From IMG/VR virus record IMGVR_UViG_3300042484_002457, positions 145,544 to 209,543 of that record: DNA of 64,000 nt, one strand, 5' to 3'. The notes under the pieces are model-generated. The model searched no databases. It was not told the origin of the DNA and saw only the letters and a program-made list of their open reading frames with translations. Shown here in pieces: positions 3,982 to 57,727 of the stretch. The position numbers and the translations under genes were made by a program. Positions within the stretch are counted from its first letter, which is position 1; each line of letters opens with the position of its first letter.

Positions 3982-4650
3982 TTATCTCGACTTGCAATGG
4001 TCCCCGTGCCATCTACCAAAGTGTCCGGGAGCAAATGATTTTTGGCAGTATACACATGAGATTCGTTCAGAGTGAGCAAATGCGTATTTTTCTTTTTGCT
4101 CTGTGGTTCTATTCAACTGCTGCTGCCTGATTATTTCTCTACGTTCAGGAGTCATTTGATCAATAGTTTTTTGTCTCAGTATTTGTTTCAGCTCGTTACT
4201 AATTGGGCCACGCTTGTGTCCAGTATTGCCAGATGTTTTACCTCGGCGAGCAATAGCTGCTTGATGGTTTTTTCTAACCTCAGGATCGTGCATTGGGTTG
4301 TTTGTTTTTGTGTGTATTGATTTAATTCTACTATATTGCTGCCTTAATAACTCGTATGTTCTTCCAGTTATTTTGTGTCGTTGTTGATTCTGGTTTTCTA
4401 AATTCGCCATAGTCCAGGCAGCATAGATCATCTTTTCTTTGTGAGGGCTAACAACCATTTTAGTCAGTAACCAATGACAAACAAAGTGTTCTCGTGCAGT
4501 TAAATCCACCAAATTTTCTTTGAGATTTGACCCATCTAAACTTCGTGGTATAATATGATGTCGTTCTTTGTATTCTGTTAGAGATCTTGTTTTTGCTCGT
4601 TGAACAATGTTGTTATACCATGTGGTATATTTGTTGTCAATAAATATCAT
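3982..4650 (-). CDS. free-standing HNH homing endonuclease with basic NUMOD3-like C-terminus
   Basis: NKYTTWY...ERHHIIPRSLDGSN...NLVDLTAREHFVCHWLL HNH motif; C-terminal CxxC...HGDHC; start at MIFIDNKY after SD AAAGGAG. Confidence 0.85.
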   Translation of the reverse strand: MIFIDNKYTTWYNNIVQRAKTRSLTEYKERHHIIPRSLDGSNLKENLVDLTAREHFVCHWLLTKMVVSPHKEKMIYAAWTMANLENQNQQRHKITGRTYELLRQQYSRIKSIHTKTNNPMHDPEVRKNHQAAIARRGKTSGNTGHKRGPISNELKQILRQKTIDQMTPERREIIRQQQLNRTTEQKEKYAFAHSERISCVYCQKSFAPGHFGRWHGDHCKSR

Positions 4651-4720
4651 TGCTGGTGCTCCTTTCAAGCATTAGAGTAGTTGGATATGTCCAGTATCGC
4701 GAACTACACCTTTATTTATA
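4651..4720 (-). promoter_or_regulatory. structured endonuclease leader: TATAAATA late promoter, nested hairpin, SD
   Basis: Near-identical architecture to 23113-23180 with compensatory changes. Confidence 0.7.
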
Positions 4721-4745
4721 AATAAACGAACAAAGATTTAACTAA

Positions 4746-6811: not shown

Positions 6812-9800
6812 ATGAATATCGAAGAGTTAGATTCCTTCAATCTTGCAGACGCTGTGAAGTTTCACAATCAGTTAAATCCCCGATTGTGGGATCAGCGTGA
6901 ACATCTCAAGCCTGATGTGCACGCCAAGCTCATGGAAATTGCTAGAGATTTCCAAGAGTTTCTGGGCGTTCCTGACCTTGAAGTCAAGGACATCACAGTA
7001 TCTGGCTCAAATGCTGCATACAATTACACACCGCACAGCGATGTAGATCTACACCTTGTGGTGGATATGCCTGACGCTAAAAACAGCGAAGTGTTTCGCG
7101 AGCTGTTTGACGCCAAGAAATTCCAGTACAACGCTGAACATGACATTCGTATTGGCGGCTATGATGTAGAACTGTATGTGCAAGATGCTGAACAAGAGCA
7201 TCACTCACAGGGCATTTACAGCCTGTTGCAAAACCGTTGGATCAGTGTGCCCAAGAGACGCAAACCTGATGTAGATGATATCAGTGTGAAAAGCAAATAC
7301 CAAGATGTGGGACACAGAATTGAAGCTGCTATCCGTGGCGGTGACGCTGCACAAATGGAAGATGTTTGGAACAAACTACGTGTGATGCGCAAGCAGGGTC
7401 TTGAGCGTGAAGGCGAGTTTGCCCCAGAAAACATTGTGTTCAAGATGCTGCGCAACAACGGCACCATTGGCAACCTCAAACAAGCAAGACAGGCTGTGCG
7501 TGATCGAGAGCTGAGTCTTGCTGAAGTCAACCGCCCCAAGCAACGTGTGCATTATGGCTTTGTAAGTGAAAGCCCCGATGGTGTAAATCCCAGTACCAAG
7601 ATGTTTCTTGAAGAAGATGATGCCGAAAGTCTTGTAACTGAATTTATTTTTACCACGGCTGACAAGCTGGGCATTAAACGTATACCAAAAATTCATATAC
7701 ACACCAATGATGACTGGAGCAGAGAAAACAACAGTTTTGGAATGTTTGTTCCTGACACATATGAACTGCATGTGAGTTTGATAAATCGCCATCCCATGGA
7801 TGTGATGCGCACCATTGCGCACGAACTAGCACATGTCCGTCAACACGAGATCAAGCCGGTCAAACCCGGTGATGGAGAAACTGGAAGTGATGTTGAAAAC
7901 GAAGCGCATGCCATAGCTGGTATTGTCATGCGAGACTTTGCCAGCAGCCATCCTGAATATTTTGAAAAGCCTGCTGTGAGCGAAAGCTCGGGATACATTC
8001 CTACCCGAGCACAGGCTCAAGATCCTCGCTTTAAAATGGCCCTGACTGTGGACATCAAGCCAGGACAAACTGGTAAGGAAGCCAACAAGCTGGCCTTGCA
8101 AACAGATGCACAAGGCCGTCCAGCACTGTTGATGAAAACAGCAAACCTGCGTGAAGGCCGGATGCCGCAGCCCAGCCAAGGGCAGGGCCAGTATAGAGAT
8201 TTAAACAAGCCCCTGGGTCCAGAAACACCTCCTACCATGCCCGCAGGCACTGTCAAGGTAGATGTGAGTGATGTGTATGACTGGTACAAGCTGGGCAGTC
8301 ATATCAGCAACCTCAAAGGTCTGGGCAAACACGACTTTGGCGCAGGACCTCCTAGTACTATCATCAGTTTTGGTGATGAGGAAACTGAACACAAGTACAT
8401 CCAAGACCTTGAAAAAACTGGACTCACTACCACAGATATTGACCCCAAGGATCCCAAGCAGCCTCCAGGAATGAAACGTCAAAAGACTGATCCCACCTAC
8501 AACGTGGCAGAAGATGACATTGTAGAAAGCCTGCGTCAAGAATTTGCTTTGCTGGAAGACGAGTACATCAGCGAAATCAAAATGACCGGAAAGAACCTGC
8601 GAGCCGAAGCTGCTCAAACAGGTGCGCAGGCTGGCATGGAATTTGAAATGATTGTGCCCAACGTTGAGACCGAAGAGCTAGACCCTGAATACGAACCAGA
8701 CTGGGATCAGGATCAGCGTACTAGAAGCTTCAGTGACATTCGAGACTTTTTCCACGATGGAGACTACAACGGTCGTCGCGAAGCAGACAACCTAATGGAA
8801 GAAATACAAAACGAGTATGAAGAATGGCAAGCAGAACAAACTGACGAAGCCTGGGCTCGAGATGGAGTAGATTACATGCGTGACTTTGTTGAAGTCAATG
8901 ACTTGTTTGATCGTGAAGAAGCTATAGACACTGCTCGAGACGAGGTCATTGACGCTAACCCTGACTTGCCACCTGAAAGCAAAGACTTCCAGGACCTGCT
9001 TCGTGCCAGACTCGATGAACTACAAGAACAGTTTGTGCTAGAATCGTTTGAAGATCAAGGCCGCATCTACAATGACGCATTGCAAGCGTTTGCAGAAGAG
9101 CAAAGAGACGAATACGACGAACGCAGTTTCTTGGATGACAAGTATCCCATGATGACAGATATTCAAAGCAACTTTGATATTTCATGGCCCCACTACTACA
9201 ACATCAACGATGGTCAAGACAGTGGAGAAGTGGATGTAGATCAAGTAGCTGATGAGTTTGGCTCATACATGGGCAAACCTGTGAATGCCAGCAGACAATA
9301 CCATGGCGGTCGTCGCGAAGCAGGAACCTATGTAGTAGAACCCGACGGCAGCTTAGAAGGTGACAACCCAGGTGATGGTGGCCTTGAGTTTGTTAGTCCG
9401 CCCATGCCCATAGATGAAATGATTTCAGACTTGAACAAGGTCAAGGCCTGGGCAGACAAGACTGGTTGCTATACCAACGACTCTACAGGCTTGCACATCA
9501 ATATCTCAGTGCCCAATTATTCAATTGACAAACTGGACTATGTAAAATTGGCCATCCTCATGGGCGACGAATACATTCTGGACTTGTTTGGTCGCTCAGG
9601 CAACACCTATGCCAAATCAGCCATGGGCAAGATCAAGTCAGCACTGAAACAAAAACCCGAAGCGTCAGCACAAATCATGGACTTGATGAAACAAGGACTG
9701 GACGGTGCTGCAACCAAGGCCATACACACAGGTATCACAGACAAGTACACGTCAATCAACACCAAGACTGGCTATATTGAATTCCGTAGCCCCGGTGGTG

Positions 9801-10933
9801 ACTGGCTGGACAGCAATTTTGACAAGATTGAAAACACCCTGTTGCGTTTTACTGTGGCCCTGAGTGCTGCTATCAATCCAGAAGCATACCGCAAAGAATA
9901 CTTGACCAAGCTGTACAAGTTGTTGTCCGAAGGCATGGCGGACAAGAGTGACGTAAACATTATTCAGTTGTTCTCCAACTACTCAGCTGGTGAACTGGAC
10001 AAAGCTGCTCTAATCCGTCAAGTGCGTCAAAAGCAACTGGCTCGCAATGTTGCCAAGGGCAAGGCCACAGGCAAGATGTGGTGGAATGTTTCTAGACCAG
10101 GATACATGGGCAGCATCGAAGTTGTTGCTAACAGCAAAGAAGAAGCCATTGATGTTGCATTACAGCCGAGCAATTATCCAAACTGGGCAAGTGCTAGAAA
10201 TACATTACAGGCTAAACCATTACGTCCATACCAAGAAAAGCCAAGCGCACCTGCACAACCTGCTGCGGACAATCAAGGCAACTGGGGTATCTGGTTGGAT
10301 GCTGCAGAACGCTTTGTCCGAATACCTCGCACCGAAACTGGTGGCGACGGGCAAGCCTTGCGTAGATTCTCTAGCCAAGCGGCTGCAATGGCGTTCTTGG
10401 AGCGAACTCGAGAAGAGAATCCACTAATGAGAAGAGACATCAGCATTCGCGAAATCCCTGCAGACTATCAGTGGCCACCCGTTGCACCGGCTGTTAACCG
10501 CAATACGCTGACACCAACCGGTCCTGGACCTTGGGAAGTGTTTAGAATCAGTGACGGGTCAAGTGTAGCAGAGCTGGGGCAGACCAACCGCATGAGTGCT
10601 GAAGTAGAAGCTCGCGGAGTGATTGATCAACGTGGCGAAGCACCTGAACTGTATGGAGTAAGAACTCGTCAGTCTGACGCAGCACAAGGTGGCACAGTTG
10701 ATGTAGGGGGAGAAACACCTGCAACAGCACCGCAGACACTGACTCGTCCCGGACAAGGCCAACAACAGTTCACAGGCACATGGCGAGTGTTAGATCCTGA
10801 AGACCGTGAGATCTATCGCTTTAGTGGTGTGGGCAACAACCAATCAGATGCCAATCGTGTGGCCCTGAACTGGATGCGTCAAAATCCTGGTCGCATGCAA
10901 GCAGGTGTCACAGTGGTCCCGGAGATGACCTAA
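6812..10933 (+). CDS. 1373 aa multidomain protein: Pol-beta-type nucleotidyltransferase + zincin (HExxH) + amidoligase (COOH-NH2 ligase) + tandem small C-terminal domains
   Basis: VSGSNAAYNYTPHSDVDLH (GS...DxD); IAHELAHVRQHE; GMEFEM, EPDGSL, GLEFVSPP, STGLHINIS, YIEFRSPGG. Confidence 0.75.
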   Translation: MNIEELDSFNLADAVKFHNQLNPRLWDQREHLKPDVHAKLMEIARDFQEFLGVPDLEVKDITVSGSNAAYNYTPHSDVDLHLVVDMPDAKNSEVFRELFDAKKFQYNAEHDIRIGGYDVELYVQDAEQEHHSQGIYSLLQNRWISVPKRRKPDVDDISVKSKYQDVGHRIEAAIRGGDAAQMEDVWNKLRVMRKQGLEREGEFAPENIVFKMLRNNGTIGNLKQARQAVRDRELSLAEVNRPKQRVHYGFVSESPDGVNPSTKMFLEEDDAESLVTEFIFTTADKLGIKRIPKIHIHTNDDWSRENNSFGMFVPDTYELHVSLINRHPMDVMRTIAHELAHVRQHEIKPVKPGDGETGSDVENEAHAIAGIVMRDFASSHPEYFEKPAVSESSGYIPTRAQAQDPRFKMALTVDIKPGQTGKEANKLALQTDAQGRPALLMKTANLREGRMPQPSQGQGQYRDLNKPLGPETPPTMPAGTVKVDVSDVYDWYKLGSHISNLKGLGKHDFGAGPPSTIISFGDEETEHKYIQDLEKTGLTTTDIDPKDPKQPPGMKRQKTDPTYNVAEDDIVESLRQEFALLEDEYISEIKMTGKNLRAEAAQTGAQAGMEFEMIVPNVETEELDPEYEPDWDQDQRTRSFSDIRDFFHDGDYNGRREADNLMEEIQNEYEEWQAEQTDEAWARDGVDYMRDFVEVNDLFDREEAIDTARDEVIDANPDLPPESKDFQDLLRARLDELQEQFVLESFEDQGRIYNDALQAFAEEQRDEYDERSFLDDKYPMMTDIQSNFDISWPHYYNINDGQDSGEVDVDQVADEFGSYMGKPVNASRQYHGGRREAGTYVVEPDGSLEGDNPGDGGLEFVSPPMPIDEMISDLNKVKAWADKTGCYTNDSTGLHINISVPNYSIDKLDYVKLAILMGDEYILDLFGRSGNTYAKSAMGKIKSALKQKPEASAQIMDLMKQGLDGAATKAIHTGITDKYTSINTKTGYIEFRSPGGDWLDSNFDKIENTLLRFTVALSAAINPEAYRKEYLTKLYKLLSEGMADKSDVNIIQLFSNYSAGELDKAALIRQVRQKQLARNVAKGKATGKMWWNVSRPGYMGSIEVVANSKEEAIDVALQPSNYPNWASARNTLQAKPLRPYQEKPSAPAQPAADNQGNWGIWLDAAERFVRIPRTETGGDGQALRRFSSQAAAMAFLERTREENPLMRRDISIREIPADYQWPPVAPAVNRNTLTPTGPGPWEVFRISDGSSVAELGQTNRMSAEVEARGVIDQRGEAPELYGVRTRQSDAAQGGTVDVGGETPATAPQTLTRPGQGQQQFTGTWRVLDPEDREIYRFSGVGNNQSDANRVALNWMRQNPGRMQAGVTVVPEMT

Positions 10934-11919
10934 TGAGAGCACAAGAATTTGTAACAGAACTGTTTGAGCCAGGCAAAAAGTGGCAGTGGAGTTTTACTGG
11001 CAGTGAAGAAGCAGTAGCAGTATTTCATGTTGGTGAAGTGCCTTACATGTTCCATGCATATGGCGCCGTCGGTGAATGGGAAGCAGAGTTCAAGCGGTAT
11101 GGTAACAAACTAGATCGATCGCAAAAGTTTGGACTAACTGGCACTGGTAACTCAGCAGAAGTCATGAGCACAGTGGTTGACATCATGCGAGCGTTCTTGG
11201 AAAAATACAAGGACAAGATACAAGTGCTGACATTCAGTGCCAAGGAAGATTCCCGTCAGGGTCTATATGCCCGAATGGTCAAACGACTGCTGCCCGACTG
11301 GACCATGAAACAATCCGGTGAGCACTTTGTTCTTGTGGCTCCCAAACAAGATGTCACAGAAACATGGGGTGTTGAAAAGTATCCTATTCCGCTGCCAATT
11401 GGGCAGTACCTTGCTGTTGGTAGTGATGAGTTTGCTCCGCCGGGCAACTATGCCAGTGCAGACGATCTTGTGGATGATGTGTACGACTTGATAGATGCAG
11501 GTGTTGAGCCCACAGTGGTTGCAGTTGATCCCAAGACTCTGTTGGCCACACAAGACTGGCTTAGTAACGAAGGCGGCGGCGATCCCTTGTTTGACGAGTA
11601 CCCGGACAAGCCTGTGATATACAAGAAGGCAGGCAAGCTGTACATCCTTGACGGGCATCACAGAACCACACGAGCTTGGAAAGCTGGTAGACCTATTTCA
11701 GTATACCTGTTTGGGGACGATCAACAAAACGAACTGGACGAAAACTTTGCAGATGGCCGAAACCCACAAGACAAAGGTGATTCAAAGCGTCACGGTATCA
11801 ATACCAAAGCATCAGTTAGTAGTCTACGCAAAACTGCCAAACAAGGCGGCCGCAAAGGACAACTGGCACACTGGCTGGCTAACATGAAGTCTGGTAGAGC
11901 AAAGGCCAAACGAAAATGA
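10933..11919 (+). CDS. modular protein with capsid-targeting-like N-terminus, central ParB/sulfiredoxin-like domain and basic tail
   Basis: MRAQEFVTE-LF start; LLATQDW...PVIYKK...YILDGHHR ParB-like core; tail after LDE. Confidence 0.7.
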   Translation: MRAQEFVTELFEPGKKWQWSFTGSEEAVAVFHVGEVPYMFHAYGAVGEWEAEFKRYGNKLDRSQKFGLTGTGNSAEVMSTVVDIMRAFLEKYKDKIQVLTFSAKEDSRQGLYARMVKRLLPDWTMKQSGEHFVLVAPKQDVTETWGVEKYPIPLPIGQYLAVGSDEFAPPGNYASADDLVDDVYDLIDAGVEPTVVAVDPKTLLATQDWLSNEGGGDPLFDEYPDKPVIYKKAGKLYILDGHHRTTRAWKAGRPISVYLFGDDQQNELDENFADGRNPQDKGDSKRHGINTKASVSSLRKTAKQGGRKGQLAHWLANMKSGRAKAKRK

Positions 11920-12377
11920 GCGCATATCGACTTGATCCTTTTTATGGCATTGGTGCTGTTTCCTTGAATGCAAACACCGCTAGAGCTCAGATAGAGCTGC
12001 GACCCAGTATGTTTTTGAATTTGGCACACAGACTTGATGCCAACAGTGAATGTGCACTCCGTATAATACCCTACATCAGAACCAGATTGCAGTCAAGAGG
12101 TATTGGATATCCAATACTGCACATTGCGCCGCCTTTGGAATGGCGTAATAACGATTTTTCCAAACCTTGTCAAGTTATTGAAAGCAACGGACGCCATCGT
12201 ATGCATGCAATTATGGAGGTTCAAGGCGATGAACCTATTCCAGTATTGTTGGTACCTTGGCAAGATATTACACAACAAGAGTTAAATACATGGCTACCTC
12301 GCATGCGTGAGCAAATGCTCAGTCAGGATGGCGAGTTGGTATCAGGTCAATTATGGGATCAAACACATGAGAGCTAA
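11916..12377 (+). CDS. hypothetical protein, ParB-like motif
   Basis: VIESNGRHRMHAI...PIPV resembles ParB-N (D/E)GxHR core. Confidence 0.55.
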   Translation: MSAYRLDPFYGIGAVSLNANTARAQIELRPSMFLNLAHRLDANSECALRIIPYIRTRLQSRGIGYPILHIAPPLEWRNNDFSKPCQVIESNGRHRMHAIMEVQGDEPIPVLLVPWQDITQQELNTWLPRMREQMLSQDGELVSGQLWDQTHES

Positions 12378-12567
12378 AGAGTTTGTTAATGAAAGTGTTG
12401 CGCCGGGCTTTCACGTGTATCAAGCACGAGTCAAAGTCAACAATCCTCTTTACTCTAACAGTATTGATGTTGCAGTGTTTGCCAAAGGTCCGGCTATGGC
12501 TCGCGCTCTGTTACAGGCACAGTACGGCAAAGATAGTGTTGTGACCAACGTTACACAAATTGCATAA
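12367..12567 (+). CDS. small protein with capsid-targeting-like N-terminus
   Basis: Internal ATG 12367 gives MRAKEFVNE-SVAP (66 aa); followed by CTGTGGC-GCAAA-GCCACAG hairpin. Confidence 0.7.
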   Translation: MRAKEFVNESVAPGFHVYQARVKVNNPLYSNSIDVAVFAKGPAMARALLQAQYGKDSVVTNVTQIA

Positions 12568-12601
12568 TTCTCTGTGGCGCAAAGCCACAGATACATAAGT
12601 G

Positions 12602-13441
12602 ATGATAGACATTGTTACTGTTGTTTTCCAAGAAGAAATTCCAATTTTAAAAGTACAAGCAGAGTCAGTTGCACGATACTGCCAAAATATTGGTATCCGT
12701 AATATCTATGTGGTAGTCAATGATGACGAAGACACCATACACAAAATTGATGCTGGTTGGTGGGGTGACTTGGCCAATCATGTGTTGGTAGTACCGCGTT
12801 CAGCGTTTAGCACACAGTTTATAGATAATGGTTGGGTCAGTCAGCAGGCTCTTAAATTGCTAGCGGCTGCTATGAGCCATAACACCTGGAGCATGGTACT
12901 AGATGCCAAAACAGTATTTGTGCGTGAGCTGCAACTGACTGATTTATTGGACTGTGATGGCCGTGCACGAGTAGGCACATTACCAGTGTTCCCAGTGTTT
13001 GAACCCACACGACTCATGATCAATGAGTTGTACAACATAGACATGAAAGATCAACTGGGGCCAGGCGGCGTGCCCTTTTTCTTTCAAAATGATGTAGTGC
13101 GACTCATGATTGCAGAAACAACATTCTTGGCCAAGAAAAGTTTTCCCATATGGTTTCAAGCAAAAGGACGCATCACTGAGTTTATGCTGTACTCAGGATA
13201 CTTGCAATATAGATTTGGCGGATACGATACATTTTACTCGTCTGACTCAGCATTTGGTGCAGTGAACATCAGCCATGGCGAAGTTGATCAATTCAACACC
13301 AAGCTCAAGCAAATGCAAGATCCACGTACTCTTACAGTGAGTATACATCGTGGCGCCTGGAGTCAACTCAGCGCAGACCAACGCCAAGAATATCAGTTTA
13401 GATTAATTGAAGCAGGCCTAATAGGAGCACACAGTTTATGA
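12602..13441 (+). CDS. GT-A-like glycan-related protein (paralog of 15785-16666)
   Basis: GWVSQQALKL, VLDAKTVF, TEFMLY motifs shared with 15785-16666. Confidence 0.55.
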   Translation: MIDIVTVVFQEEIPILKVQAESVARYCQNIGIRNIYVVVNDDEDTIHKIDAGWWGDLANHVLVVPRSAFSTQFIDNGWVSQQALKLLAAAMSHNTWSMVLDAKTVFVRELQLTDLLDCDGRARVGTLPVFPVFEPTRLMINELYNIDMKDQLGPGGVPFFFQNDVVRLMIAETTFLAKKSFPIWFQAKGRITEFMLYSGYLQYRFGGYDTFYSSDSAFGAVNISHGEVDQFNTKLKQMQDPRTLTVSIHRGAWSQLSADQRQEYQFRLIEAGLIGAHSL

Positions 13442-13950
13442 AAGCCCTGTGCTTGGTTGCACATCCCGACGACTGTGTTATATTTGCCTACAGCTATATT
13501 CATAACCATCCTGAACTGGATTGGACGATTGGCTATTTGACCTACACTGCTGACAGTGAACGTGGTGTTGAGTTATCAGCATTTTGGCAACGACGAAACA
13601 TACCTTGTGTGTTCCTTGGCTTTGTTGATGACTACCGAGATCAGGAGCAGCAACAATTGTTACAATGGTACGGTATTGATGCCATGGCCGAGTGTGCCAA
13701 TCTTGCCCGACAATACGACTTAGTTTTGACCCACGATGAACACGGTGATTACGGGCACATACATCATCAAGTGGTGCACGATGCAGTAAAACTCCATCCA
13801 CGTTTGATTACATTTGCCAAGCCTGGTCAAGGTACAACATACACAGTACCGCCAGGCACATACACTCTTGATGAATTGCCCATGCACGGTGAAATTGTTG
13901 CCAGCTTTCATAGCCATGAACACAAAAACAGTTACAAGGAATCAAAATGA
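13438..13950 (+). CDS. PIG-L/LmbE-family deacetylase-like protein
   Basis: LVAHPDDC and THDEHGDYGHIHHQ metal-binding motifs. Confidence 0.75.
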   Translation: MKALCLVAHPDDCVIFAYSYIHNHPELDWTIGYLTYTADSERGVELSAFWQRRNIPCVFLGFVDDYRDQEQQQLLQWYGIDAMAECANLARQYDLVLTHDEHGDYGHIHHQVVHDAVKLHPRLITFAKPGQGTTYTVPPGTYTLDELPMHGEIVASFHSHEHKNSYKESK

Positions 13951-14759
13951 AATTGATGGTAGCAGGATGCAGCTTTAGTGCTGTGAGTCAAAAGCATCCA
14001 GGCACAGCCTGGAGCGAAGTTCTAGCACAACGCCTGGGCTGGGACTTGGAAAATCTAGCACGCCAAGGATGCAGCAATGGCGGTATCCGCGTGCAGATTG
14101 AAGAAATTATTAGACAACGACCAGACTTTGCAATTGTGACTCCTACGTTTTGGGACCGGATGGAAATCCCTGCAACTGCTGCACCATTTGACTGGAAGAA
14201 AAGCACAGGCGGTTGGAATCCTGAAATTCAAAAACACCTACAGGATCGCACATTAAAAAATGGGTATAATCGTGCTGATGGTATCAACAATGTCAACTAT
14301 GGCAACAACAACTACAACATGATTTGCGAGACCATCTATACCTTGGCAGAGAACTTTAGTCACCCCTATCGGTCAGGCCTGATCAGCAAGGTATCACAAA
14401 ACGCAGTGCGTTACTACATTGATGCCATCTATGATTCAGAATGGAAGAAGCAACAAGACGAGTGGTTGATCAAAGAAGGTATATTTGAGCTGTATCATGC
14501 CGGCATAGACTTCTTGTTTGTGCCTGTACTGCTGTGGCCCTTTGATCCTGTACTGGGCCAACAACAGTGGCGCAACGTGATTACCACGGCTATACCTGAT
14601 CGCAATGTGATGTTCAATGAACCAGAATCAGTACTGCCCATTTGTGGCAACAATCCGTTTACGGGCGAAGATCCTGGATATCATAGCGGTGCACAAGGGC
14701 AAAAGATCATTGCTGAAAACTACTATCGCAGAATCACTCAAGACTTTGGGCTGACTTAA
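13947..14759 (+). CDS. SGNH-hydrolase-like protein
   Basis: N-terminal VAGCSFS, GCSNGGI, C-terminal DPGYH. Confidence 0.55.
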   Translation: MKLMVAGCSFSAVSQKHPGTAWSEVLAQRLGWDLENLARQGCSNGGIRVQIEEIIRQRPDFAIVTPTFWDRMEIPATAAPFDWKKSTGGWNPEIQKHLQDRTLKNGYNRADGINNVNYGNNNYNMICETIYTLAENFSHPYRSGLISKVSQNAVRYYIDAIYDSEWKKQQDEWLIKEGIFELYHAGIDFLFVPVLLWPFDPVLGQQQWRNVITTAIPDRNVMFNEPESVLPICGNNPFTGEDPGYHSGAQGQKIIAENYYRRITQDFGLT

Positions 14760-15804
14760 ACAACTGCTGCATTTGGTGCTTGACTTCAGGCACCATTTCC
14801 AGCAACCTGGCATGATTGTGATCCAGTACTGACTGCAATTGATTTTGCACAGCCACAGGATCTTGTTGGCTGAGATACACCACTTGCTGCATAGCAAGAT
14901 CAAACCGCTCAAAATCCAAGGGACTATTGTCGTAGCTTTCATCTATCACACTACCAAACGTTTGGAATCCTTGATCTCTCAAACGTTTTAAATGATGCTG
15001 ATTTCCGAACAGAACAAATATGCGTTTGGCAAACAAGGCTTTGATACTTTTTTCACTCATGAAGAATCCGCCACCAGTGCCTAGGGTTTCGGTCAAGATA
15101 CTATAGTATGTGCGTTGATAAATGCGTTCAGGTACAATAAAACTTATTTGATTGTTGATATTTTGCGCAACCTCCCACGCAGGATCAAGATGCGGACTCA
15201 CATAAGGATACAGCAAAGGTGTGTCTTTAAATATTTCAGCAAACTCTTGATTTTGATGATTGATCACACCACCTGGAAAACAATCACGATATGTAACAAT
15301 GCACTGATCCAACAAGTTGTTTTTTGCTAGACCCAGTATCACATAGTCTCTGTTGGGCCTGCGAGCACCTAGCAGTGCATCAAACATATAGTGCTTGTGG
15401 TCATTGCGTGTGTCCACAAAGGTATTTGTATCAACAAAGCGTTCAATGTAAAAATTGCGATACAACATTCGACCAGGATCTAACACATTGTTTTGATGGG
15501 TGCCGCCCAGTGCAATCAAGTAGTTGTTGATGCGATTATCACGACACCACTGTTCAATTTGCGGCTGCGAAAAATATTCAGGATCACTTATCAACACAAG
15601 ATCAAACTGGTCAAGTTGGATATTGGCAATTAATGCATCGTAACTAAAGATCCAGGCACAATTATAAAAGGGTCGTACTGCTGCTACACGATATGGTTGT
15701 GCTAGAGCTGTCTCTAAATCAGTTGTGGTTTGGTCAGGCGTAAAACCCCAGTCATGTGCACAGTTTACACTTTGCCAGCAGGGGTTATAAACTTTGAATT
15801 GCAT
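14734..15804 (-). CDS. putative glycosyltransferase-like protein
   Basis: 356 aa; YYSILTET...FMSEKSIK...LRDQGFQTF...IDESYD motif typical of phage glycan genes. Confidence 0.5.
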   Translation of the reverse strand: MQFKVYNPCWQSVNCAHDWGFTPDQTTTDLETALAQPYRVAAVRPFYNCAWIFSYDALIANIQLDQFDLVLISDPEYFSQPQIEQWCRDNRINNYLIALGGTHQNNVLDPGRMLYRNFYIERFVDTNTFVDTRNDHKHYMFDALLGARRPNRDYVILGLAKNNLLDQCIVTYRDCFPGGVINHQNQEFAEIFKDTPLLYPYVSPHLDPAWEVAQNINNQISFIVPERIYQRTYYSILTETLGTGGGFFMSEKSIKALFAKRIFVLFGNQHHLKRLRDQGFQTFGSVIDESYDNSPLDFERFDLAMQQVVYLSQQDPVAVQNQLQSVLDHNHARLLEMVPEVKHQMQQLFKSAQSLE

Positions 15805-16666
15805 GACATTTCTCTTTTACTTTGGCAAGGTGCCGATTAAAGTTGGCTATGGTCAAGGTGTCCCAATCCATTTGCATACTGAGACTGAGATCAGGTATGG
15901 CATCGCATATGGAATTGTGCGCGGAACCAAATCCAGCAATGTTGCTCAAGGTATTGTATTCGTAACGATGTTGTGCTTGGTATGTTACACTGCCCTGGGA
16001 CACTGCCCAGTTACCCAGTAGCTCGTATTCACTGAACCATTTGATAATGTTGCCTGTACCCCAAGGCGGAACTGTGGGCATCCCTGGTACCGCATCAATA
16101 ATTGCATCCAACCAGTGCTTGTTGGGCCAACGCTGTTGCAGATGTTCACGAAGTTTTACAAAATCTTTTTTTCTAACTGCACATAATTCAGTAACAAAGC
16201 AATGTGGTGATTGATGGCGCAACCCTGTGATGGCTTCAAACACCCCATTGTAACTGCCTTGGGTGGTGTTCATTAGTGACAACAAATTTAACTGATTGTT
16301 GGGATAGGGATTGTATGGCTCAAGCATAAATGTATCAGCATCGTGCATGAGAAAAACATCATGCTCCAATATGTCAAGATATGCTAACTTGATAGCTTGC
16401 TGGCGCAACCACCAGCCACGGTAGTCATCTGGAAACACCCAGTTGTTGACTTCAGGGTATTGTTTATATATTATGCTATCGTTAATGTATTCAAAGCGAC
16501 TGCTGTCAATATTGTATTTGTGCCAGACTGGCTCAAGTTCGTCCCGTGTCATTGGACTAGCAATCACTGTGGTATCAATACCTTTAAGGTTGTGATCCCA
16601 CTGCATAGCAAATGCTGCATGAGGCACACGATACTTGGCCAAAAACAAAACTCTTGCAACTGTCAT
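15785..16666 (-). CDS. GT-A-like glycan-related protein (paralog of 12602-13441)
   Basis: GWWLRQQAIKL, MHDADTF, FSEYELLG. Confidence 0.55.
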   Translation of the reverse strand: MTVARVLFLAKYRVPHAAFAMQWDHNLKGIDTTVIASPMTRDELEPVWHKYNIDSSRFEYINDSIIYKQYPEVNNWVFPDDYRGWWLRQQAIKLAYLDILEHDVFLMHDADTFMLEPYNPYPNNQLNLLSLMNTTQGSYNGVFEAITGLRHQSPHCFVTELCAVRKKDFVKLREHLQQRWPNKHWLDAIIDAVPGMPTVPPWGTGNIIKWFSEYELLGNWAVSQGSVTYQAQHRYEYNTLSNIAGFGSAHNSICDAIPDLSLSMQMDWDTLTIANFNRHLAKVKEKCHAIQSL

Positions 16667-17661
16667 GTTTGATTACAACTGTTGACACAGGCATATAACC
16701 TGCCTGTGGAAATACTAGTGTTTTGCCAAGATGCTTCCACCTGATCAAACCACTCCATACAATGCTCTAGACTATGCTCAAGAGCATTGTTTTCACGAAC
16801 CATGTCAGTTAATTGGCTGTTTCCTGGATGTGTCATTTGTCCAGGATAGAATCCCAAATAGCAACAGGGATAAACAGATCCATCGGCGGCCAAATATATT
16901 TCTCTATTGACTTTGTGTTGACATCTCAAATTCAATTGCTCAGTATCTTTTTGTAGTTGTATTGTTTTGGCATCAAACCATGTGACATGACTGTGAAGCA
17001 AAGCGTCAATAGGTGGCGGTGTTGATGCAGGGCCCAACCAATGCGAAAAGGTGCCATCTCGGGCATACACTGGCCCTGCATCGCGGCCATCATAGATGTT
17101 TTCAAACCGCGCAAACCCCCACTCCTGGGCCAATCTTTTGCATTCAGCTTCTTGGTGACGATTGTGATCAAACGGTACAAATCTCCAAAGTGCTTGCCCC
17201 CCAGCATTGATATAGGCACGAGCATTTTCTGTTACTCGATTCCAATCTGTATCTTGACGGTACAGTGCGTGGGTGTCAGCAAGGCCGTCCAGAGCAAAGC
17301 CTATAGTGACCAAGGGATGGGCCATCTGTGCCCACCAATCAGGGGTTCTTGCTCCCCCATTGGTGTTGATGTTTACTTGTATGCCCTGACTGCTCAACCA
17401 CTGCACAATTTCTGCTCCGTCTCGGGCCAGTGCAAAATCTCCAAGATTGCCGTTGAAATTTACAGCATAGTTGGAATTGAGTTTTAGTTGGGGTATCAAG
17501 GGCTCAATAATATGTTTAAACTCAGGTAGCCTAAGCTCGCATGTGGGATATCCTGAGTTGTAATCTACCCCGCGGTAGTTTCTTGGGCACATTGGACACC
17601 TGGCATTACACCGTGTTGTGAGTTCAACATGAACACGACGTATATCGCTAACTTTCAGCAT
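16663..17661 (-). CDS. radical SAM protein with SPASM/twitch-type C-terminus
   Basis: ELTTRCNARCPMCPR (CxxxCxxC); C-terminal C...DGSVYPCC; start at MLKV. Confidence 0.85.
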   Translation of the reverse strand: MLKVSDIRRVHVELTTRCNARCPMCPRNYRGVDYNSGYPTCELRLPEFKHIIEPLIPQLKLNSNYAVNFNGNLGDFALARDGAEIVQWLSSQGIQVNINTNGGARTPDWWAQMAHPLVTIGFALDGLADTHALYRQDTDWNRVTENARAYINAGGQALWRFVPFDHNRHQEAECKRLAQEWGFARFENIYDGRDAGPVYARDGTFSHWLGPASTPPPIDALLHSHVTWFDAKTIQLQKDTEQLNLRCQHKVNREIYLAADGSVYPCCYLGFYPGQMTHPGNSQLTDMVRENNALEHSLEHCMEWFDQVEASWQNTSISTGRLYACVNSCNQT

Positions 17662-17665
17662 TGGA

Positions 17666-17693
17666 TATTTATAGGCATACATTTTGCTAAATA
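17666..17693. promoter_or_regulatory. divergent pair of T4-like late promoters
   Basis: TATAAATA on minus strand (17673-17666) and TAAATA on plus strand (17688-17693). Confidence 0.6.
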
Positions 17694-17698
17694 TTATT

Positions 17699-18001
17699 AT
17701 GCAAGCTGAATTTATTATTGCCGTGGTAGATGTTTATTGCAAATGGACTGGCGAGCACCCACGCTATCGCTGCTATGTTAATGATGAGCTATTTGCCGAG
17801 CGCACATGGATATGGCACAACGAGTACCTTGAAGAAGAATTTCAAATTCAAGCGCCACCAGGTAACTATAAAATCAGATACGAGCTGGTTGATCCAGCCA
17901 ATGCCAAGTTAAAAATTCGCAATGTTAGAGTGTGTGTGGGTCCAGCAGTGGTAGACCCAAATGGCATAGTTCAAATATACACGCCGGAGAAACCACAATG
18001 A
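17699..18001 (+). CDS. hypothetical protein
   Basis: ATG 17699, 100 aa, beta-rich. Confidence 0.7.
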   Translation: MQAEFIIAVVDVYCKWTGEHPRYRCYVNDELFAERTWIWHNEYLEEEFQIQAPPGNYKIRYELVDPANAKLKIRNVRVCVGPAVVDPNGIVQIYTPEKPQ

Positions 18002-18201
18002 GACTGCGGGAAATTACTGAAAACGTCAGCACTGTAGCAGGATCTTTTGCTCCAGTCGTTATGCCCATGGGCACTGTGTCAAGAAACGGCGGAGGCTTGC
18101 TTTCAGGTAAATATACAACTGATCCTACGCCTAACACGCCCAAGGAATACAAAAGGAACAAAAATGCTCGCGGACGCTTTAAAAACTCTCCTGGCAACTG
18201 A
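17998..18201 (+). CDS. small protein with capsid-targeting-like N-terminus
   Basis: Internal ATG 17998 gives MRLREITE-NVST (67 aa). Confidence 0.65.
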   Translation: MRLREITENVSTVAGSFAPVVMPMGTVSRNGGGLLSGKYTTDPTPNTPKEYKRNKNARGRFKNSPGN

Positions 18202-18607
18202 ATACGCATTCGTAATCAAGGCCCAGCTATTTCACTGGAATGTGGAGGGTCCAGACTTTGCTCAACTGCACAAGTTCTTTGGCAAGATCTACGACGAAGT
18301 GTACGAAAATTCTATAGATCAAACCGCAGAGTTTATCCGCATTTTAGATGACTACACTCCTGGCAGCTTTGAACGTTTTGGTGAGCTGTCTACAATTTCT
18401 GGCCAAACCAAGATTCCGCGTGCTCGACTCATGATTGAAGAGTTGTATGCCAACAACGATCAAATGATAGACTTACTGAACAAAACATTCCAAATTGCTG
18501 AACAAGAAAATCAGCAAGGCATCATGGACTTCCTGGCCGCTCGCATTGACGCACACGGCAAGCACGGTTGGATGTTGAGAAGTTTTTTGAAAGACGCTAG
18601 AGCATGA
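18164..18607 (+). CDS. dps: Dps-family ferritin-like DNA protection protein
   Basis: FHWNVEGPDFAQLHKFF...D..AE ferroxidase motif; SD AAAGGA before ATG 18164; 147 aa. Confidence 0.9.
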   Translation: MLADALKTLLATEYAFVIKAQLFHWNVEGPDFAQLHKFFGKIYDEVYENSIDQTAEFIRILDDYTPGSFERFGELSTISGQTKIPRARLMIEELYANNDQMIDLLNKTFQIAEQENQQGIMDFLAARIDAHGKHGWMLRSFLKDARA

Positions 18608-19341
18608 GTTCATCAGACATTAGAGATATACTAAGCCGACTGTCATCACTGGAGGAGTCTCAATTGACTCCAACTTCGGTTCGGCACGGATTAAATCCAC
18701 AACAGAAAAAAGCAGGGCAACTACCTGCACTGTTCAAACCCAAGGATATAAGTCCCACACTTACAAAGAAACCCTATCAAAAGCATCCCATGGACGGCAA
18801 GCTGGTTGGCGACAGTGTAGAGCCAAAAAAGAATCCGCTTGAAGAAGCCATGCAAGAAGTTGAAGAAGACATGCTCAGCAAGGTCAAATCAACTTTTGTT
18901 GATTATCTTGAGCAATTAGAAGATAAAAACAAAATTGACAGTCGCTTGGTGCGCAAAGCCAAGGCTGAACTCAACATTGATGACGATCCACAAACTGAAG
19001 AAGTTGATGGCGGCGCAACCTGGGACGCTGATGTGGCCCCCCCAAGTGATCCTGGTGATACAGAAACTGCACACGGGCTGGAAGATCATATAGCCGCTGC
19101 GGTGAGTCAGCCAGCAGCACCTGTTGCAACCATGGAAATGGTTGCACAATTTGAAGGTCACGATGGTATCCCGTTTGAATGCTGGGGCGACAACGATCAA
19201 GGATACGAAATACGACGCCAAGACAAAGCATTACCCACACGCTTTAAATCGCCAGGCGAGGCAGAAGTAGCAGTAAAGTTGTTTCAACAAAGAAGAAAGA
19301 AGCAACAGGACTTGAGTCAAGATTATATAGAAGAACGCTGA
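18604..19341 (+). CDS. hypothetical acidic modular protein
   Basis: 245 aa, coupled to dps; LxE/VxE linkers. Confidence 0.7.
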   Translation: MSSSDIRDILSRLSSLEESQLTPTSVRHGLNPQQKKAGQLPALFKPKDISPTLTKKPYQKHPMDGKLVGDSVEPKKNPLEEAMQEVEEDMLSKVKSTFVDYLEQLEDKNKIDSRLVRKAKAELNIDDDPQTEEVDGGATWDADVAPPSDPGDTETAHGLEDHIAAAVSQPAAPVATMEMVAQFEGHDGIPFECWGDNDQGYEIRRQDKALPTRFKSPGEAEVAVKLFQQRRKKQQDLSQDYIEER

Positions 19342-19342
19342 T

Positions 19343-22048
19343 ATGTACATTACACAACTATTACCACAACAAACGTCTAGCATTCGTAGACTAGACGAAA
19401 GTGTCCTATTAGAAGATCCAGTATACCGCAAGTTCAAGACTGTGGGTCGTTACATTGCTGAACGCCGCATGAGCGAAAAAGAAATTCTACAAGTATTTGC
19501 AGACGCCGAAGCAGGCATGACTGACAAAGCTACCGGAGCCAACCGTACTATGTTAGGCCGTGGCAAAGATACCACCATGGACTTTGCTGGCGGTGTAAAA
19601 GACGCAGTGTCTAGTGTACTCAACAGCATACAGAATTCAGTTCCTGTTGCCGCAGTAGATGTTGCTTATGACCAAGCCACTGACGCTTTGGCCAATATGG
19701 CTGGCGGACAAAAAGGCAAAGTCATGCAGGCCATCAAAGGCTATCGCAACTTGGTCAAACAGTATCCTAAAACAGCAGGCTTTGCCAAAGCAGCCTTGGT
19801 TGCTATCGCTGGTCTAGCCACAGGCGGTGCAGGGTTGCCTGCTATTGCAGGTTTGACCTATGCACTGGATTCGGCTATCCGTGGAGATAAACTATCCAGC
19901 GTTCTTGGCAAAGGTGCTGGCGCTACTGCTGTTACTTGGGGCGGTCAACAAGTGGCCGGTGCTTTGGGCGGTGGAGATGCTGCTACTCCTGATTCAAATT
20001 CTCAAGGTCCAAATGTTGATGATAGAATTGATGCTGCTAGAGCAAGAGTTGACGCAGCCAATTCCAAATTAGGAATAGACGGGTCTGCACAGAACTACGA
20101 TGTTACAGGTAATGTCAGTCAGGCTGCCGGAGTTGATACACCTTTGCCACAAGGTGCCACAGTAAGATGCCCGTTGGGATCATGCAATGGTGATGCATGG
20201 CAAGTGAAGCCTGGCGAAACTTTTAGCGATATTGCACAACAAATTGGTGTGCCACCAGAAGAGCTAGTTAAACTGAATCCTGGGCTTGCTGGACCTGGCG
20301 GCACTTATACTGTGATGAAAGGTGACCAACTGGGATTTATTGCTCAAGCGCAAGGAACAACACCCGAAGCAATTCGCGCAGCAAATCCAGATATTAATTT
20401 TTCCAAGGCATTGCAGCAAGGACAAGAAATCAATTTACCTGCTGCTGGTACTCCTGGTCAAGGCAGTGTGTGGGCAGATTACAAGGGCGGCATGTATGGA
20501 GACAAAGCAGCCGCGCAAACAGCAGGTTCTGGCACAGGATCTGTTGGACCAACAAATCTTGGACCAAATTTTAATCCGGACAATGTTCCTGCAGGTTGGA
20601 CAATGAAACAAGCACCTAGTCCAATAGACACAACTGCTGGAACTACTCAACGTTATATTCCACAGTCTGATGGTACTTGGATTGATGCTAGCACGGGCAA
20701 AGTTGCAGATGCTGCTAAACTACAAGCATCGCAGGACGCTGTGAGAAATGCGTTGCGCACAGGATTTAAAGAATCTATCAAGTTTAAAACACTGCCAGTT
20801 GACAAATTAATTGATCACAAACTCACTGTAATGTCTTGGGCACTAAATGAAAGTGTAGGCAAACCACAAGGTCAAAGCGTACAGCTGACCACTGCTGGTA
20901 CCTACACAGTGTTTGAAAACGTTGACCGATATCGCAAGGCCGTCATGGAACTCAAAGGTGTGCCAGGCAGCACACGCCCAGCTCAATATCGACCAGACAT
21001 GTCCGGCGGCGCCGGCGTGAAATCCAAGCCAGGGATTGTTGGCAAAGGCCTTAACTGGTTAGACAAAACTGCAGGCAAAGTAGGCGGAGCACTGAGCAAT
21101 TTTGGACATCAGTTTACTACTAACGTCACAAAAGAAAAACTCAAGATGAACTGGCACCAGGCCGGCAAGCCCAGTGATTCAGATCAATTGGCTGCTTGGT
21201 TAGCCAAACAAGGTGTGCCACAAGACGTTGTTACCAGTGTGTATAGCAAGATGGGTATTCCTGTTAGTGCGCCAAGTCCAGTCCCAACACCTGAGCCTGC
21301 GCCAATGGATACTAATCCCGCACCAACACCGTCTCCAACACCTGTATCGATAAATCGTTCAGGCATTGGAAGAATAGCAGGATCAACTGAAGTTGCGTCA
21401 GGCTTGATAAATCCCAAAACTAAAAAACCATACACTTATCAAGAACTCAGAGCCATGGGCAGCGAACCAGAGACTGCACCAACTACTCCAACTACGCCAA
21501 GTACAACACCAACAGTTGCCCCAGTAGGTTACAACGCCAAGAACGTTATGAACCTGCCAGGCATGGAAAAATATGCCAAGCAGCCTGCAGCGCCGGCCAA
21601 GACAGCCAACTTTGGCGTACCCAATGCATACAGCAAAACTACTACCACAGTTAAACCCATGGCTGGGGTACCTGGTGCCAAGACTGCTACACCAGCAGCA
21701 CCTGTTGCACCAGCAGCACCTGCAGCGCCTGGCGTACCAGCAGCACCTACAATGAAAATTGGTGGCCAGGCCTTGAATCCAAAGAATCCCGCCGATAAAA
21801 AGATCATTGACAAAGTACAAGCACAGGCTGAAAAAGTAGCAGAAGCTCTTGAAATACCTGTGTCCAAAATGCTAGACCTAGTTGAGACAAAAGAAGATGT
21901 GCGCCAGATTAAAAATTTCATTGATCAGACCTTTGTAAAATATGGTATGATAGGCGAAAGTGCATTTGTTGTTCGTAACAAATTGATTGAGCACGTGACA
22001 CATGTTGGCGCACAACGCCGTAGAGAGTTTGCCCGCAAGAACAGCTGA
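19343..22048 (+). CDS. 901 aa LysM-domain protein with Gly/Ala-rich hydrophobic helices and Pro-rich linkers
   Basis: Two LysM repeats (WQVKPGETFSDIA...LNPGL; YTVMKGDQLGFIA...ANPDI...QEINLP); GFAKAALVAIAGLATGGAGLPAIAGLTYAL. Confidence 0.75.
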   Translation: MYITQLLPQQTSSIRRLDESVLLEDPVYRKFKTVGRYIAERRMSEKEILQVFADAEAGMTDKATGANRTMLGRGKDTTMDFAGGVKDAVSSVLNSIQNSVPVAAVDVAYDQATDALANMAGGQKGKVMQAIKGYRNLVKQYPKTAGFAKAALVAIAGLATGGAGLPAIAGLTYALDSAIRGDKLSSVLGKGAGATAVTWGGQQVAGALGGGDAATPDSNSQGPNVDDRIDAARARVDAANSKLGIDGSAQNYDVTGNVSQAAGVDTPLPQGATVRCPLGSCNGDAWQVKPGETFSDIAQQIGVPPEELVKLNPGLAGPGGTYTVMKGDQLGFIAQAQGTTPEAIRAANPDINFSKALQQGQEINLPAAGTPGQGSVWADYKGGMYGDKAAAQTAGSGTGSVGPTNLGPNFNPDNVPAGWTMKQAPSPIDTTAGTTQRYIPQSDGTWIDASTGKVADAAKLQASQDAVRNALRTGFKESIKFKTLPVDKLIDHKLTVMSWALNESVGKPQGQSVQLTTAGTYTVFENVDRYRKAVMELKGVPGSTRPAQYRPDMSGGAGVKSKPGIVGKGLNWLDKTAGKVGGALSNFGHQFTTNVTKEKLKMNWHQAGKPSDSDQLAAWLAKQGVPQDVVTSVYSKMGIPVSAPSPVPTPEPAPMDTNPAPTPSPTPVSINRSGIGRIAGSTEVASGLINPKTKKPYTYQELRAMGSEPETAPTTPTTPSTTPTVAPVGYNAKNVMNLPGMEKYAKQPAAPAKTANFGVPNAYSKTTTTVKPMAGVPGAKTATPAAPVAPAAPAAPGVPAAPTMKIGGQALNPKNPADKKIIDKVQAQAEKVAEALEIPVSKMLDLVETKEDVRQIKNFIDQTFVKYGMIGESAFVVRNKLIEHVTHVGAQRRREFARKNS

Positions 22049-51766: not shown

Positions 51767-51841
51767 CTGGCGTTCGTATAATGGATAATACAGGGGATTT
51801 CTACTCCCTAAATAGCGGTTCGATTCCGTTACGCTGGACCA
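51767..51841 (+). tRNA. tRNA-Arg(TCT)
   Basis: CTGGCGT/ACGCTGG, GGGGA-TTTCTAC-TCCCT, GGTTCGATTCC, CCA. Confidence 0.9.
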
Positions 51842-51854
51842 AACTACTACAAAA

Positions 51855-52412
51855 ATGAATAGCAGTACTGATCGTCGCACTTTTCAGCTCAAGTCTTACA
51901 TCCAACGATGCAAGGACGATGGCAAAGAACCACAGGAAGAATATATGAAACTGTATCAAGACGAGGCTGACCGCGCCCGGGAAAATGAAGCCAGCGAGGA
52001 GTGGAAAAAATACAATCTAGAACACGACCTGCGTAGTACTAGTTGGATCTGCGACAAAGTCAAGTCACGCGAAGAGTATGCTCAAAACATCTATGCTGCC
52101 TTGTGCAACAACAAATTTGTGAAAAATGATGTTTGGCCCTTGCTCCAGGAACAACGCTGGTCATGCTCGTGGCGCTATGCCGGGGGCATTGTGGCTGACA
52201 TGCTCGAACAAGGTGATTACATTGACTGGTACTGTTCGGGCATCCGCGGCAGCGTCACACAAGAAGATTTCAAGGACATGACCCCTGAACAAATTGAAAA
52301 ACATCAGTGGATGAACAAGCATTTTGTGGGAGAAAGCTATGTTACTGATGAAGTACAAGAAGATCTGTTCAAGCTGGGCTGGATAGTAGTGGACAAGGAC
52401 CAAGACCATTGA
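51855..52412 (+). CDS. hypothetical protein
   Basis: 185 aa; YAQNIYAALCNN, WSCSWRYAGG, DYIDWYCSG. Confidence 0.75.
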   Translation: MNSSTDRRTFQLKSYIQRCKDDGKEPQEEYMKLYQDEADRARENEASEEWKKYNLEHDLRSTSWICDKVKSREEYAQNIYAALCNNKFVKNDVWPLLQEQRWSCSWRYAGGIVADMLEQGDYIDWYCSGIRGSVTQEDFKDMTPEQIEKHQWMNKHFVGESYVTDEVQEDLFKLGWIVVDKDQDH

Positions 52413-54857: not shown

Positions 54858-54864
54858 GGACCAT

Positions 54865-55773: not shown

Positions 55774-55782
55774 GGAATCGTT

Positions 55783-56370: not shown

Positions 56371-56375
56371 CAATA

Positions 56376-56461
56376 GCAACGCCAGCAGATGCTGACGTCG
56401 GATTATAAGGACGCATGGGATTGTCCCTTTACTAGATGTCATCTAGAACGCCCACCGTAGC
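56376..56461 (+). promoter_or_regulatory. structured 5' leader of dctP-like gene
   Basis: After ATAAATA; GCAACG/CGTAGC closing stem with CAGCA/TGCTG, GGGA/TCCC, CTAGAT/ATCTAG hairpins. Confidence 0.45.
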
Positions 56462-56497
56462 AGACAACTGCAAGCAAAACTCACACAAGGAAAAAAC

Positions 56498-57725: not shown

Positions 57726-57727
57726 CC

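Follow-up and report, generated by a model that had tools for sequence, protein, structure and literature searches.

The internal proteins IPI, IPII and IPIII of bacteriophage T4 carry an N-terminal capsid-targeting sequence (CTS), and Alt and gp24 carry N-terminal propeptides (Mullaney & Black 1996, reviewed in PMC9026906, PMC3012670 and PMC5694885). The first 10 residues of IPIII suffice for incorporation into the head, residues 4 and 7 acting in targeting and residues 8 and 10 in processing, and the prohead protease gp21 cuts after L/I-x-E (PMC9026906). Alt has propeptides at both ends, losing six residues at ITE-6 and 63 at LTE-619 (PMC5694885). For the polyvalent proteins of phages and conjugative elements, packaging was deduced, in the accessible part of the account by Iyer et al. 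(2017, PMC5512222), from fusions to MuF or portal proteins and from gene context. Here we analysed a 64,000-nucleotide (nt) stretch of viral DNA (the window, to which positions refer unless another sequence is named), which comprises bases 145,544–209,543 of IMG/VR record IMGVR_UViG_3300042484_002457, a single linear viral contig of 209,543 bp, and runs to the contig end. Three genes of the window, starting at positions 10933, 12367 and 17998, begin with similar short leader peptides. These N-termini are probably capsid-targeting or propeptide leaders of the T4 kind, cut by a gp21-type prohead protease, and the proteins that bear them internal or ejected. A sequence-only reading of this DNA had compared the three peptides to T4 MKTYQEFIAE and to the Alt start MELITE-LF. 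Both quotations were confirmed on the T4 record (NC_000866), in which IPII and IPIII begin with MKTYQEFIAE, IPI with MKTFKEF, Alt with MELITELFDE and gp24 with MAKINELLRE.

The three leaders are located as follows (a slash marks a predicted cut; aa, amino acids):

10933–10959, plus strand: leader 1, MRAQEFVTE, predicted to be cut after E9 (VTE/LF; compare ITE/LF of T4 Alt).
12367–12567, plus strand: 66-aa protein with leader 2, MRAKEFVNE (12367–12393); predicted cut VNE/S.
17998–18201, plus strand: 67-aa protein with leader 3, MRLREITE (17998–18021); predicted cut ITE/N.

All three peptides are present as gene starts, as the sequence-only reading had stated, with a GGAG-like ribosome site (GGAG or GGGA) 8–12 nt 5′ of each ATG. 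Open reading frame (ORF) 10933–11919 encodes 328 aa with the N-terminus MRAQEFVTELFEPG; the frame opened by the ATG at 12367 has the N-terminus MRAKEFVNESVAPG and a stop at 12567, and that opened at 17998 has the N-terminus MRLREITENVST and a stop at 18201. Leader 3 is shorter by one residue, its Glu standing at position 8 and not 9. The 12367 protein belongs to a conserved family of 61–74 aa, in which the leader varies and the body is kept from VAPGFHVY on, and the 17998 protein to one of 65–70 aa, among whose leaders are MRAHEIME, MKMRDIME, MRANEFILE and MRAAEFVKE. Beyond the leader, the three proteins are mutually unrelated, their bodies representing different families.

The contig encodes T4-type replication proteins (a gp32-like single-stranded DNA-binding protein, UvsX and the gp43 DNA polymerase), and its estimated completeness of 58% implies a genome of ~360 kb. 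By DNA polymerase, the nearest cultured relatives are Phosso, Atu_ph07 and the Rak2-like group, giant phages of the T4 superfamily, at 43–52% identity. The closest relatives measure 300–356 kb; the closest of all is G001, whose orthologue of the 10933 protein is 82% identical (G and L numbers are our own handles for genomes and loci). Searches of 50,697 cultured-phage records by tblastn and megablast, using the region and the 328-aa protein together with the 245-aa and 901-aa proteins encoded further downstream, found no cultured phage with shared DNA or target proteins. The window is DNA of an uncultured giant T4-superfamily phage.

The consensus of the leaders is M-[RK]-[AIL]-x-[ED]-[FLI]-[ILV]-x-E. 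A scan of the contig gave three matches to the strict form M[RK]xxE[FILVM]xxE in all six frames of the 209.5 kb, two of them at these gene starts. The looser form M[RK]xx[ED][FILVM]xxE was matched 5, 7 and 5 times in the contig and two relatives, against means of 0.4–0.7 in 1680 residue-class permutations. The six-residue core was found at 2.1–3.4% of called gene starts and at 0.2–0.5% of internal Met residues, and is thus 5–10 times commoner at starts. Because of these permutation and internal-Met controls, the leader motif cannot be attributed to chance.

A search of viral contigs with the 328-aa protein returned 429 stretches, most of which match only its last ~60 residues, at 90–98% identity. 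ORFs containing this C-terminal piece nearly all begin with MR[AILV]x[ED][FLI]..E, irrespective of their middle part, and some proteins of 64–68 aa consist of the leader and the C-terminal piece only. Across 2.0 Mb of related viral contigs, 273 unique N-termini (167 non-redundant) fit the loose seed. Positions that the seed left free show strong biases, with A/I/L at position 3, I/L/V at position 7 in 95 of 167, and Glu at position 9 in 66 of 167. Directly behind the leader Glu, the residues S, A, G and N predominate. The leader is present on more than 150 unrelated protein families, its cargos including HAD-like, nucleotidyltransferase, SGNH-like, LysM and peptidoglycan-binding proteins (read by eye) and NUDIX proteins (precomputed Pfam matches), and leader genes form tandem arrays, such as nine consecutive genes in L069. 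This distribution marks the leader as an N-terminal tag that spans the family. Its strict DNA pattern was found in none of Atu_ph07, GAP32 and Vibrio phage 2.275.O and twice in Phosso, and the dense leader expansion is specific to the uncultured clade.

That the three genes are neighbours and two of their leaders near-identical would suit diverged paralogues that kept a common N-terminus, or a coincidental likeness. The different families of the three bodies and the spread of the leader over so many further families argue against common descent, however, and the two controls exclude chance, so that we regard an origin of this sort as very improbable.

The 328-aa protein has 2884 homologues at E ≤ 0.001, among which its parts recombine freely. 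It comprises the leader and three further parts:

10960–11361, plus strand: carrier N-domain, residues 10–143; DUF6934-like, with a possible GNAT-like fold; ends in DVTE143.
11362–11742, plus strand: ParB/Srx-like module, residues 144–270, with a DGHHR motif; ends in LDE270.
11743–11916, plus strand: NFADG module, residues 271–328; C-terminal, 56–58 aa, very basic, three-helix.

The sequence-only reading had assigned the 10933 protein an unknown N-domain followed by a ParB/Srx-like domain. The N-domain is indeed present, but it can be described as a DUF6934-like carrier (Pfam DUF6934, E 1.7e-5, just below the cut-off), which in homologues is fused to NUDIX, nucleotidyltransferase, deaminase, GNAT and chitinase-type domains. 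Its fold matches are weak and its predicted local distance difference test score (pLDDT) is low; GNAT-like Foldseek matches presumably stem from this domain. For the second domain, the DGHHR motif, a Pfam ParBc_2 match (E 0.003, below the cut-off), Foldseek matches of residues 144–270 (Srx probability 0.96, TM 0.52; ParB probability 0.84–0.91; E above 0.001) and atlas look-alikes including ParB_N clusters and Srx are all consistent with the ParB/Srx assignment, at weak or sub-threshold scores. A profile search of this module against PDB sequences gave levansucrase matches only, which we rejected as spurious. The AlphaFold model of the entire protein has a mean pLDDT of 60 and is better at residues 160–265 and in the NFADG module. 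The NFADG module is modelled as three helices (pLDDT 73).

Among 50%-identity clusters, 2204 representatives contain the NFADG module, mostly at the C-terminus of unrelated cargos. It is 90–98% identical across hundreds of viral contigs, is present in one copy in each of three large genomes examined, and forms stand-alone genes in L027, L029, L037 and L054. No Pfam match was obtained for it even at E 5, no PDB profile match, and no significant Foldseek match in PDB or AFDB clusters except one uncharacterised homologue; a guess from its charge and helicity would be that it binds DNA. The C-terminal tail of T4 Alt, with its 63-aa propeptide, was considered as a relative and set aside, since there is no visible similarity and the Alt tail is acidic whereas NFADG is basic. 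Among the 149 best NFADG-module proteins, picked regardless of their N-terminus, 74 begin with the leader; many of the others are apparently 5′-truncated or have the variant start M[IL]Lx[ED][LMF]F.

The borders of these modules end like the leader itself. Among homologues, [VIL]-x-E stands before the ParB-like module in 43 of 43 distinct contexts, and [LVI]-x-E before NFADG in 87 of 96 contexts against a background of 17%; the commonest junction linker is QGVAE. In G001 the NFADG module is a separate 68-aa gene with a leader of its own (MRASEFVTE/NFADG), whereas in this phage it is fused behind LDE, and some fusions contain internalised leader copies (NEFSITE/LFEP). A further element, AGATSAG, is preceded by [LIVM]-x-E in 19 of 19 contexts, one of which is the major capsid protein (MCP) of G002, near the position at which T4 gp23 is cut.

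The junctions also bear on whether the leader is a feature of nucleic acid or translation, that is, an A-rich, stop–start-coupled initiation region together with a short conserved cassette border for recombinational module shuffling, with no role in protein targeting. Over all related loci, leader genes use AGA for Arg-2 65 times out of 80, compared with 23% genome-wide, a bias that fits A-rich starts and ATGA or TAATG stop–start overlaps such as those at 10933 and 17998. The genes stand in tandem and their modules are clearly shuffled, and T4-type phages reportedly shuffle genes at short conserved sequences. However, the use of synonymous codons at leader positions 3, 5, 6 and 9 is about as variable as in the genome at large; conservation concerns classes of amino acid (hydrophobic residues at 6–7, Glu at 9); the [VIL]-x-E rule extends to internal junctions far from any start codon; and internalised leader copies preserve the peptide. 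An initiation or recombination signal may account for part of positions 1–2, but it cannot explain hydrophobic-x-Glu at internal junctions, and as a full account of the leader we hold it to be improbable.

Several observations concern the same elements. An AGATSAG(N)V-type element is found in L055, L067, L076, L083, L078 and others as well as in the G002 MCP (80655, minus strand), and is thereby common to the predicted mature N-terminus of the MCP and to many small leader-bearing proteins; a looser version, STVAGSFAPVV, occurs in the 17998 family. Derivation of the 17998 protein from the N-arm of an MCP was considered and could not be established (BLASTP E 0.11, not significant). On the contig under study (G000), positions 130847–134014 and 141940–143118 (L008) encode proteins of 1055 aa and 392 aa with repeated QGVAE/G linkers, as at module junctions, and with the leader-like N-termini MLLNHLFEN and MKFKDFRTEE; these may be polyproteins cut by the prohead protease. 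At G000 108977–109525 (L006/L007) lies a look-alike, recognised by eye, of Fe/Mn superoxide dismutase with a 20-residue N-terminal extension, MKLRDTISLVE/A, which may represent a packaged superoxide dismutase.

A gp21-type protease is encoded in the clade. Peptidase_S77 (gp21) scores above the Pfam cut-off in four of five large relatives (G001, G002, G003 and G005). In G001 and G002 the genes follow the T4 order of portal, small core protein, acidic core protein, protease, scaffold and MCP, and the G001 MCP is homologous to T4 gp23 (E 6e-44). In the phage studied here the head module presumably lies off the contig.

A link to virions is provided by the polyvalent protein encoded directly 5′ of the first leader gene. 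Its residues 754–1044 match Atu_ph07 AUZ94978.1, which is encoded two genes from the portal and is, by gene order and size, gp196 (57.94 kDa). The Atu_ph07 virion proteome includes this amidoligase homologue, gp196 (14 peptides, 30% coverage), and gp199, a 77-aa protein whose gene adjoins the portal (PMC6102473 Table S5). Both have leader-like N-termini, MRWQDISSKKLTE in gp196 and MKLTELFNPLTE in gp199; the G001 protein at the same position begins with MILNEFFNKE, 13 nt behind a copy of the T4 late-promoter consensus, TATAAATA. Two Atu_ph07 NUDIX proteins, gp238 and gp303, were also detected in the virion proteome, by single peptides (PMC6102473 Table S5). In the uncultured clade, the carrier domain has NUDIX as one of its most frequent fusion partners.

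The leader and the [VIL]-x-E sites could instead be read by other machinery, namely Lon-like or ClpXP-like proteases or unfoldases that recognise a degron or translocation tag, or a zincin-type peptidase of the polyvalent protein, and the proteins may then act in the infected cell and not in the virion. A Lon-like ATP-dependent protease is encoded at 102–2366 (phrog_4871, E 8e-238), and ClpP- and ClpX-like N-termini, candidates only, occur elsewhere in the contig. Iyer et al. proposed a role of metallopeptidase domains in the processing of polyvalent proteins (PMC5512222), and translocation of head proteins by ATPases of the ClpX or BCS1 type has been proposed as well (PMC7824862). Nevertheless, the motif is much closer to the specificity of gp21 and to the T4 CTS than to any known degron, [LIVM]-x-E with AGATSAG is placed near the T4 gp23 cut in the G002 MCP, and Atu_ph07 virions contain leader-like proteins; a reader other than the prohead protease seems to us unlikely.

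If the leaders are of the T4 kind, the following course can be envisaged. Late in infection, the leader would take its protein into the scaffolding core of the prohead, where the gp21-type protease would cut after the Glu of [VIL]-x-E and remove the leader. In the 328-aa protein, further cuts by the same protease, at VTE143 and LDE270, would part the modules from one another, and the head would then hold three free products: the DUF6934-like domain, a ParB/Srx-like putative nuclease or NTPase, and the small basic NFADG module. These products would leave the head with the DNA at infection.

The genes and signals around the three leaders are the following:

4717–4724, plus strand: exact copy of the T4 late-promoter consensus TATAAATA, 29 nt 5′ of gene 4746, the first of a plus-strand string that runs through the leader genes.
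6812–10933, plus strand: 1373-aa polyvalent protein with a nucleotidyltransferase-like N-terminus, an HExxH stretch (by eye) and an amidoligase domain.
11916–12377, plus strand: 153-aa ParB/Srx-like protein with an NGRHR motif; atlas look-alikes are ParB_N and sulfiredoxin, by features and by structure.
17699–18001, plus strand: 100-aa gene whose TGA stop overlaps, in the sequence, the 17998 ATG (ATGA).
18604–22048, plus strand: two downstream genes, of 245 aa (N-terminus MSSSDIRDILSRLSSLEE) and of 901 aa with a LysM/transglycosylase-like stretch.

The stop codon of the polyvalent gene overlaps the 10933 ATG. In Pfam, the polyvalent protein matches Amidoligase_2 above the cut-off and NTP_transf_2 weakly; phrog_36119 and phrog_2443 match as well. 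Since the 1373-aa and 328-aa proteins each combine two or more disparate effector domains, both are polyvalent proteins as far as domain architecture goes. Homologues carry NUDIX, deaminase and lysozyme-type domains in addition. The N-terminus of the former, MNIEELDSF, was considered as a further leader and set aside, because it lies inside a domain shared from residue 1 with cyanophage proteins. The order nucleotidyltransferase gene, 297-aa gene, polyvalent protein and leader genes is conserved.

The sequence-only reading had also held that a ParB-like core recurs at 11916–12377. Look-alikes of ORF 11916 found by language model and by structure (ParB_N and sulfiredoxin) agree with this, but hhalign against the ParB-like module of the 328-aa protein gave a probability of 1.3%, which is not significant, so that the recurrence is plausible and not proven. 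Homologues of ORF 11916 in L057 and L069 begin with MRATEFITE, and in L025 the domain forms the C-terminus of a polyvalent protein; leaders are therefore gained, lost and internalised.

The third leader gene is in every case preceded by the 100-aa gene at 17699 (the order is shared by 8 distinct related contigs), and the 245-aa gene at 18604 is likewise syntenic in related contigs. Weak PHROG matches within 18604–22048 point to endolysin and transglycosylase families, and these two genes may encode further virion or ejection proteins, their membership being uncertain. A Dps/ferritin-like gene (18164–18607; Pfam Ferritin, E 2e-20) separates the genes of the 67-aa leader protein and the 245-aa protein and lies within the conserved leader-gene block. 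Both strands of the block at 12599–17682 carry genes, which look, by eye, glycosyltransferase-like, PIG-L-like and radical-SAM-like. L061 has the orthologues of 12367, 17699, 17998 and 18604 side by side, which indicates that this block of sugar-modification and radical-SAM-type genes is an insertion in an old leader-gene block.

Exact copies of TATAAATA are few, and 27 of 31 in three genomes lie within 150 nt upstream of a gene start, G001 head genes included. The copy at 4717 as a late promoter of the leader-gene string is suggestive only. It forms part of a palindrome, TATTTATAAATA, at 4713–4724, which holds the consensus on both strands and sits between a minus-strand gene (3982–4650) and the plus-strand string. 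At the other side of the window, positions 51767–63110 contain eight tRNA genes (Arg-TCT, Leu-TAA, Leu-TAG, two Glu-TTC, two Asp-GTC and Tyr-GTA).

The proposal of the sequence-only reading that these are internal head proteins thus gains from a gp21-type protease in the clade, from the range of families bearing the leader, from the [VIL]-x-E junctions and from the leader-like virion proteins of Atu_ph07; encapsidation, cleavage and injection of these particular proteins are what we infer from them. A number of points weigh against a T4-kind leader. Packaging and cleavage have been directly demonstrated for no protein of the clade. The proteomic support comes from looser look-alikes, since the strict pattern hardly occurs in Atu_ph07, GAP32 and Vibrio phage 2.275.O. 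Translation initiation or coupling may produce some of the signal at positions 1 and 2. No gp21 or gp23 Pfam match was found in the 209.5-kb contig, which at 58% completeness is uninformative; TATAAATA is not enriched overall in the window; and ORF 11916 has no leader in this phage. Compared with the published gp21 consensus, ITE of the 17998 protein fits at P3, whereas VTE and VNE, the ends of the other two leaders, have Val in place of Leu or Ile, Val being the commonest junction class in the clade. The leaders are also one or two residues shorter than the T4 CTS.

A wider reading, which we put forward tentatively and hold to be possible, extends the T4-kind leader to the whole clade. In this uncultured group of giant T4-superfamily phages, known mostly from freshwater metagenomes, there may be a combinatorial cargo system of more than 2000 proteins assembled from interchangeable modules (enzymes, the DUF6934-like carrier, NFADG), with a T4-like leader and a prohead-protease site at every module border, each gene giving several free head-internal or injected products. 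If so, membership of the injected proteome would be readable from sequence alone. Should leader and [VIL]-x-E junctions function as their T4 counterparts do, host-delivered proteins could be predicted in thousands of uncultured genomes, with nuclease-like ParB/Srx proteins, NUDIX hydrolases, nucleotidyltransferases, deaminases, wall-degrading enzymes and perhaps superoxide dismutase as candidates. Such proteins would constitute a large set of candidate early-acting counter-defence and takeover effectors, the CTS principle of T4 would be extended from a few small T-even proteins to polyprotein-like delivery, and new short tags and junctions would become available for loading foreign proteins into phage heads.

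Like the T4 CTS, the leaders described here are N-terminal tags of about ten residues on otherwise unrelated proteins, with a Q/x-E-F-[IV]-x-E core and a hydrophobic-x-Glu end. When they are aligned to the T4 CTS with an offset of one residue, the Phe of T4 position 7, the branched hydrophobic residue of position 8 and the Glu of position 10 are kept. As in T4, the clade has a gp21-type protease and a head module in T4 order, and the tagged genes occur in variable clusters. VTE/LFE of the 10933 protein parallels ITE/LFD of Alt, and Alt provides an earlier example of an enzyme with a cleavage site on its N-terminal as well as its C-terminal side. Unlike in T4, Arg replaces Lys at position 2, and the tag is carried by far more and far larger cargos, enzymes and polyvalent proteins included. 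The tag motif also occurs between modules inside proteins, a polyprotein-like architecture seen here at the level of sequence, and the conserved basic C-terminal NFADG module has no counterpart in T4.

With the polyvalent proteins (PMC5512222), as described in the part of that account at hand, the proteins of this clade share a multidomain effector architecture including ParB/Srx, nucleotidyltransferase, NUDIX and peptidase domains, as well as predicted packaging and injection; they differ in the T4-type N-terminal leader, the [VIL]-x-E junctions and the NFADG module, none of which is mentioned in that part. The searchable literature yielded no account of this leader system in giant phages. 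The phiKZ-like giant phages (phiKZ, 201phi2-1 and SPN3US) possess many head-internal proteins that are cut after Glu by a gp21-related protease, and their propeptides are thought to target inner-body or ejection proteins to the prohead. Unlike the leaders of the present clade, those propeptides exceed 100 residues, are cut at S/A/G-x-E, have no common short leader and belong to a different lineage. The targeting principle itself is classical T4 biology.

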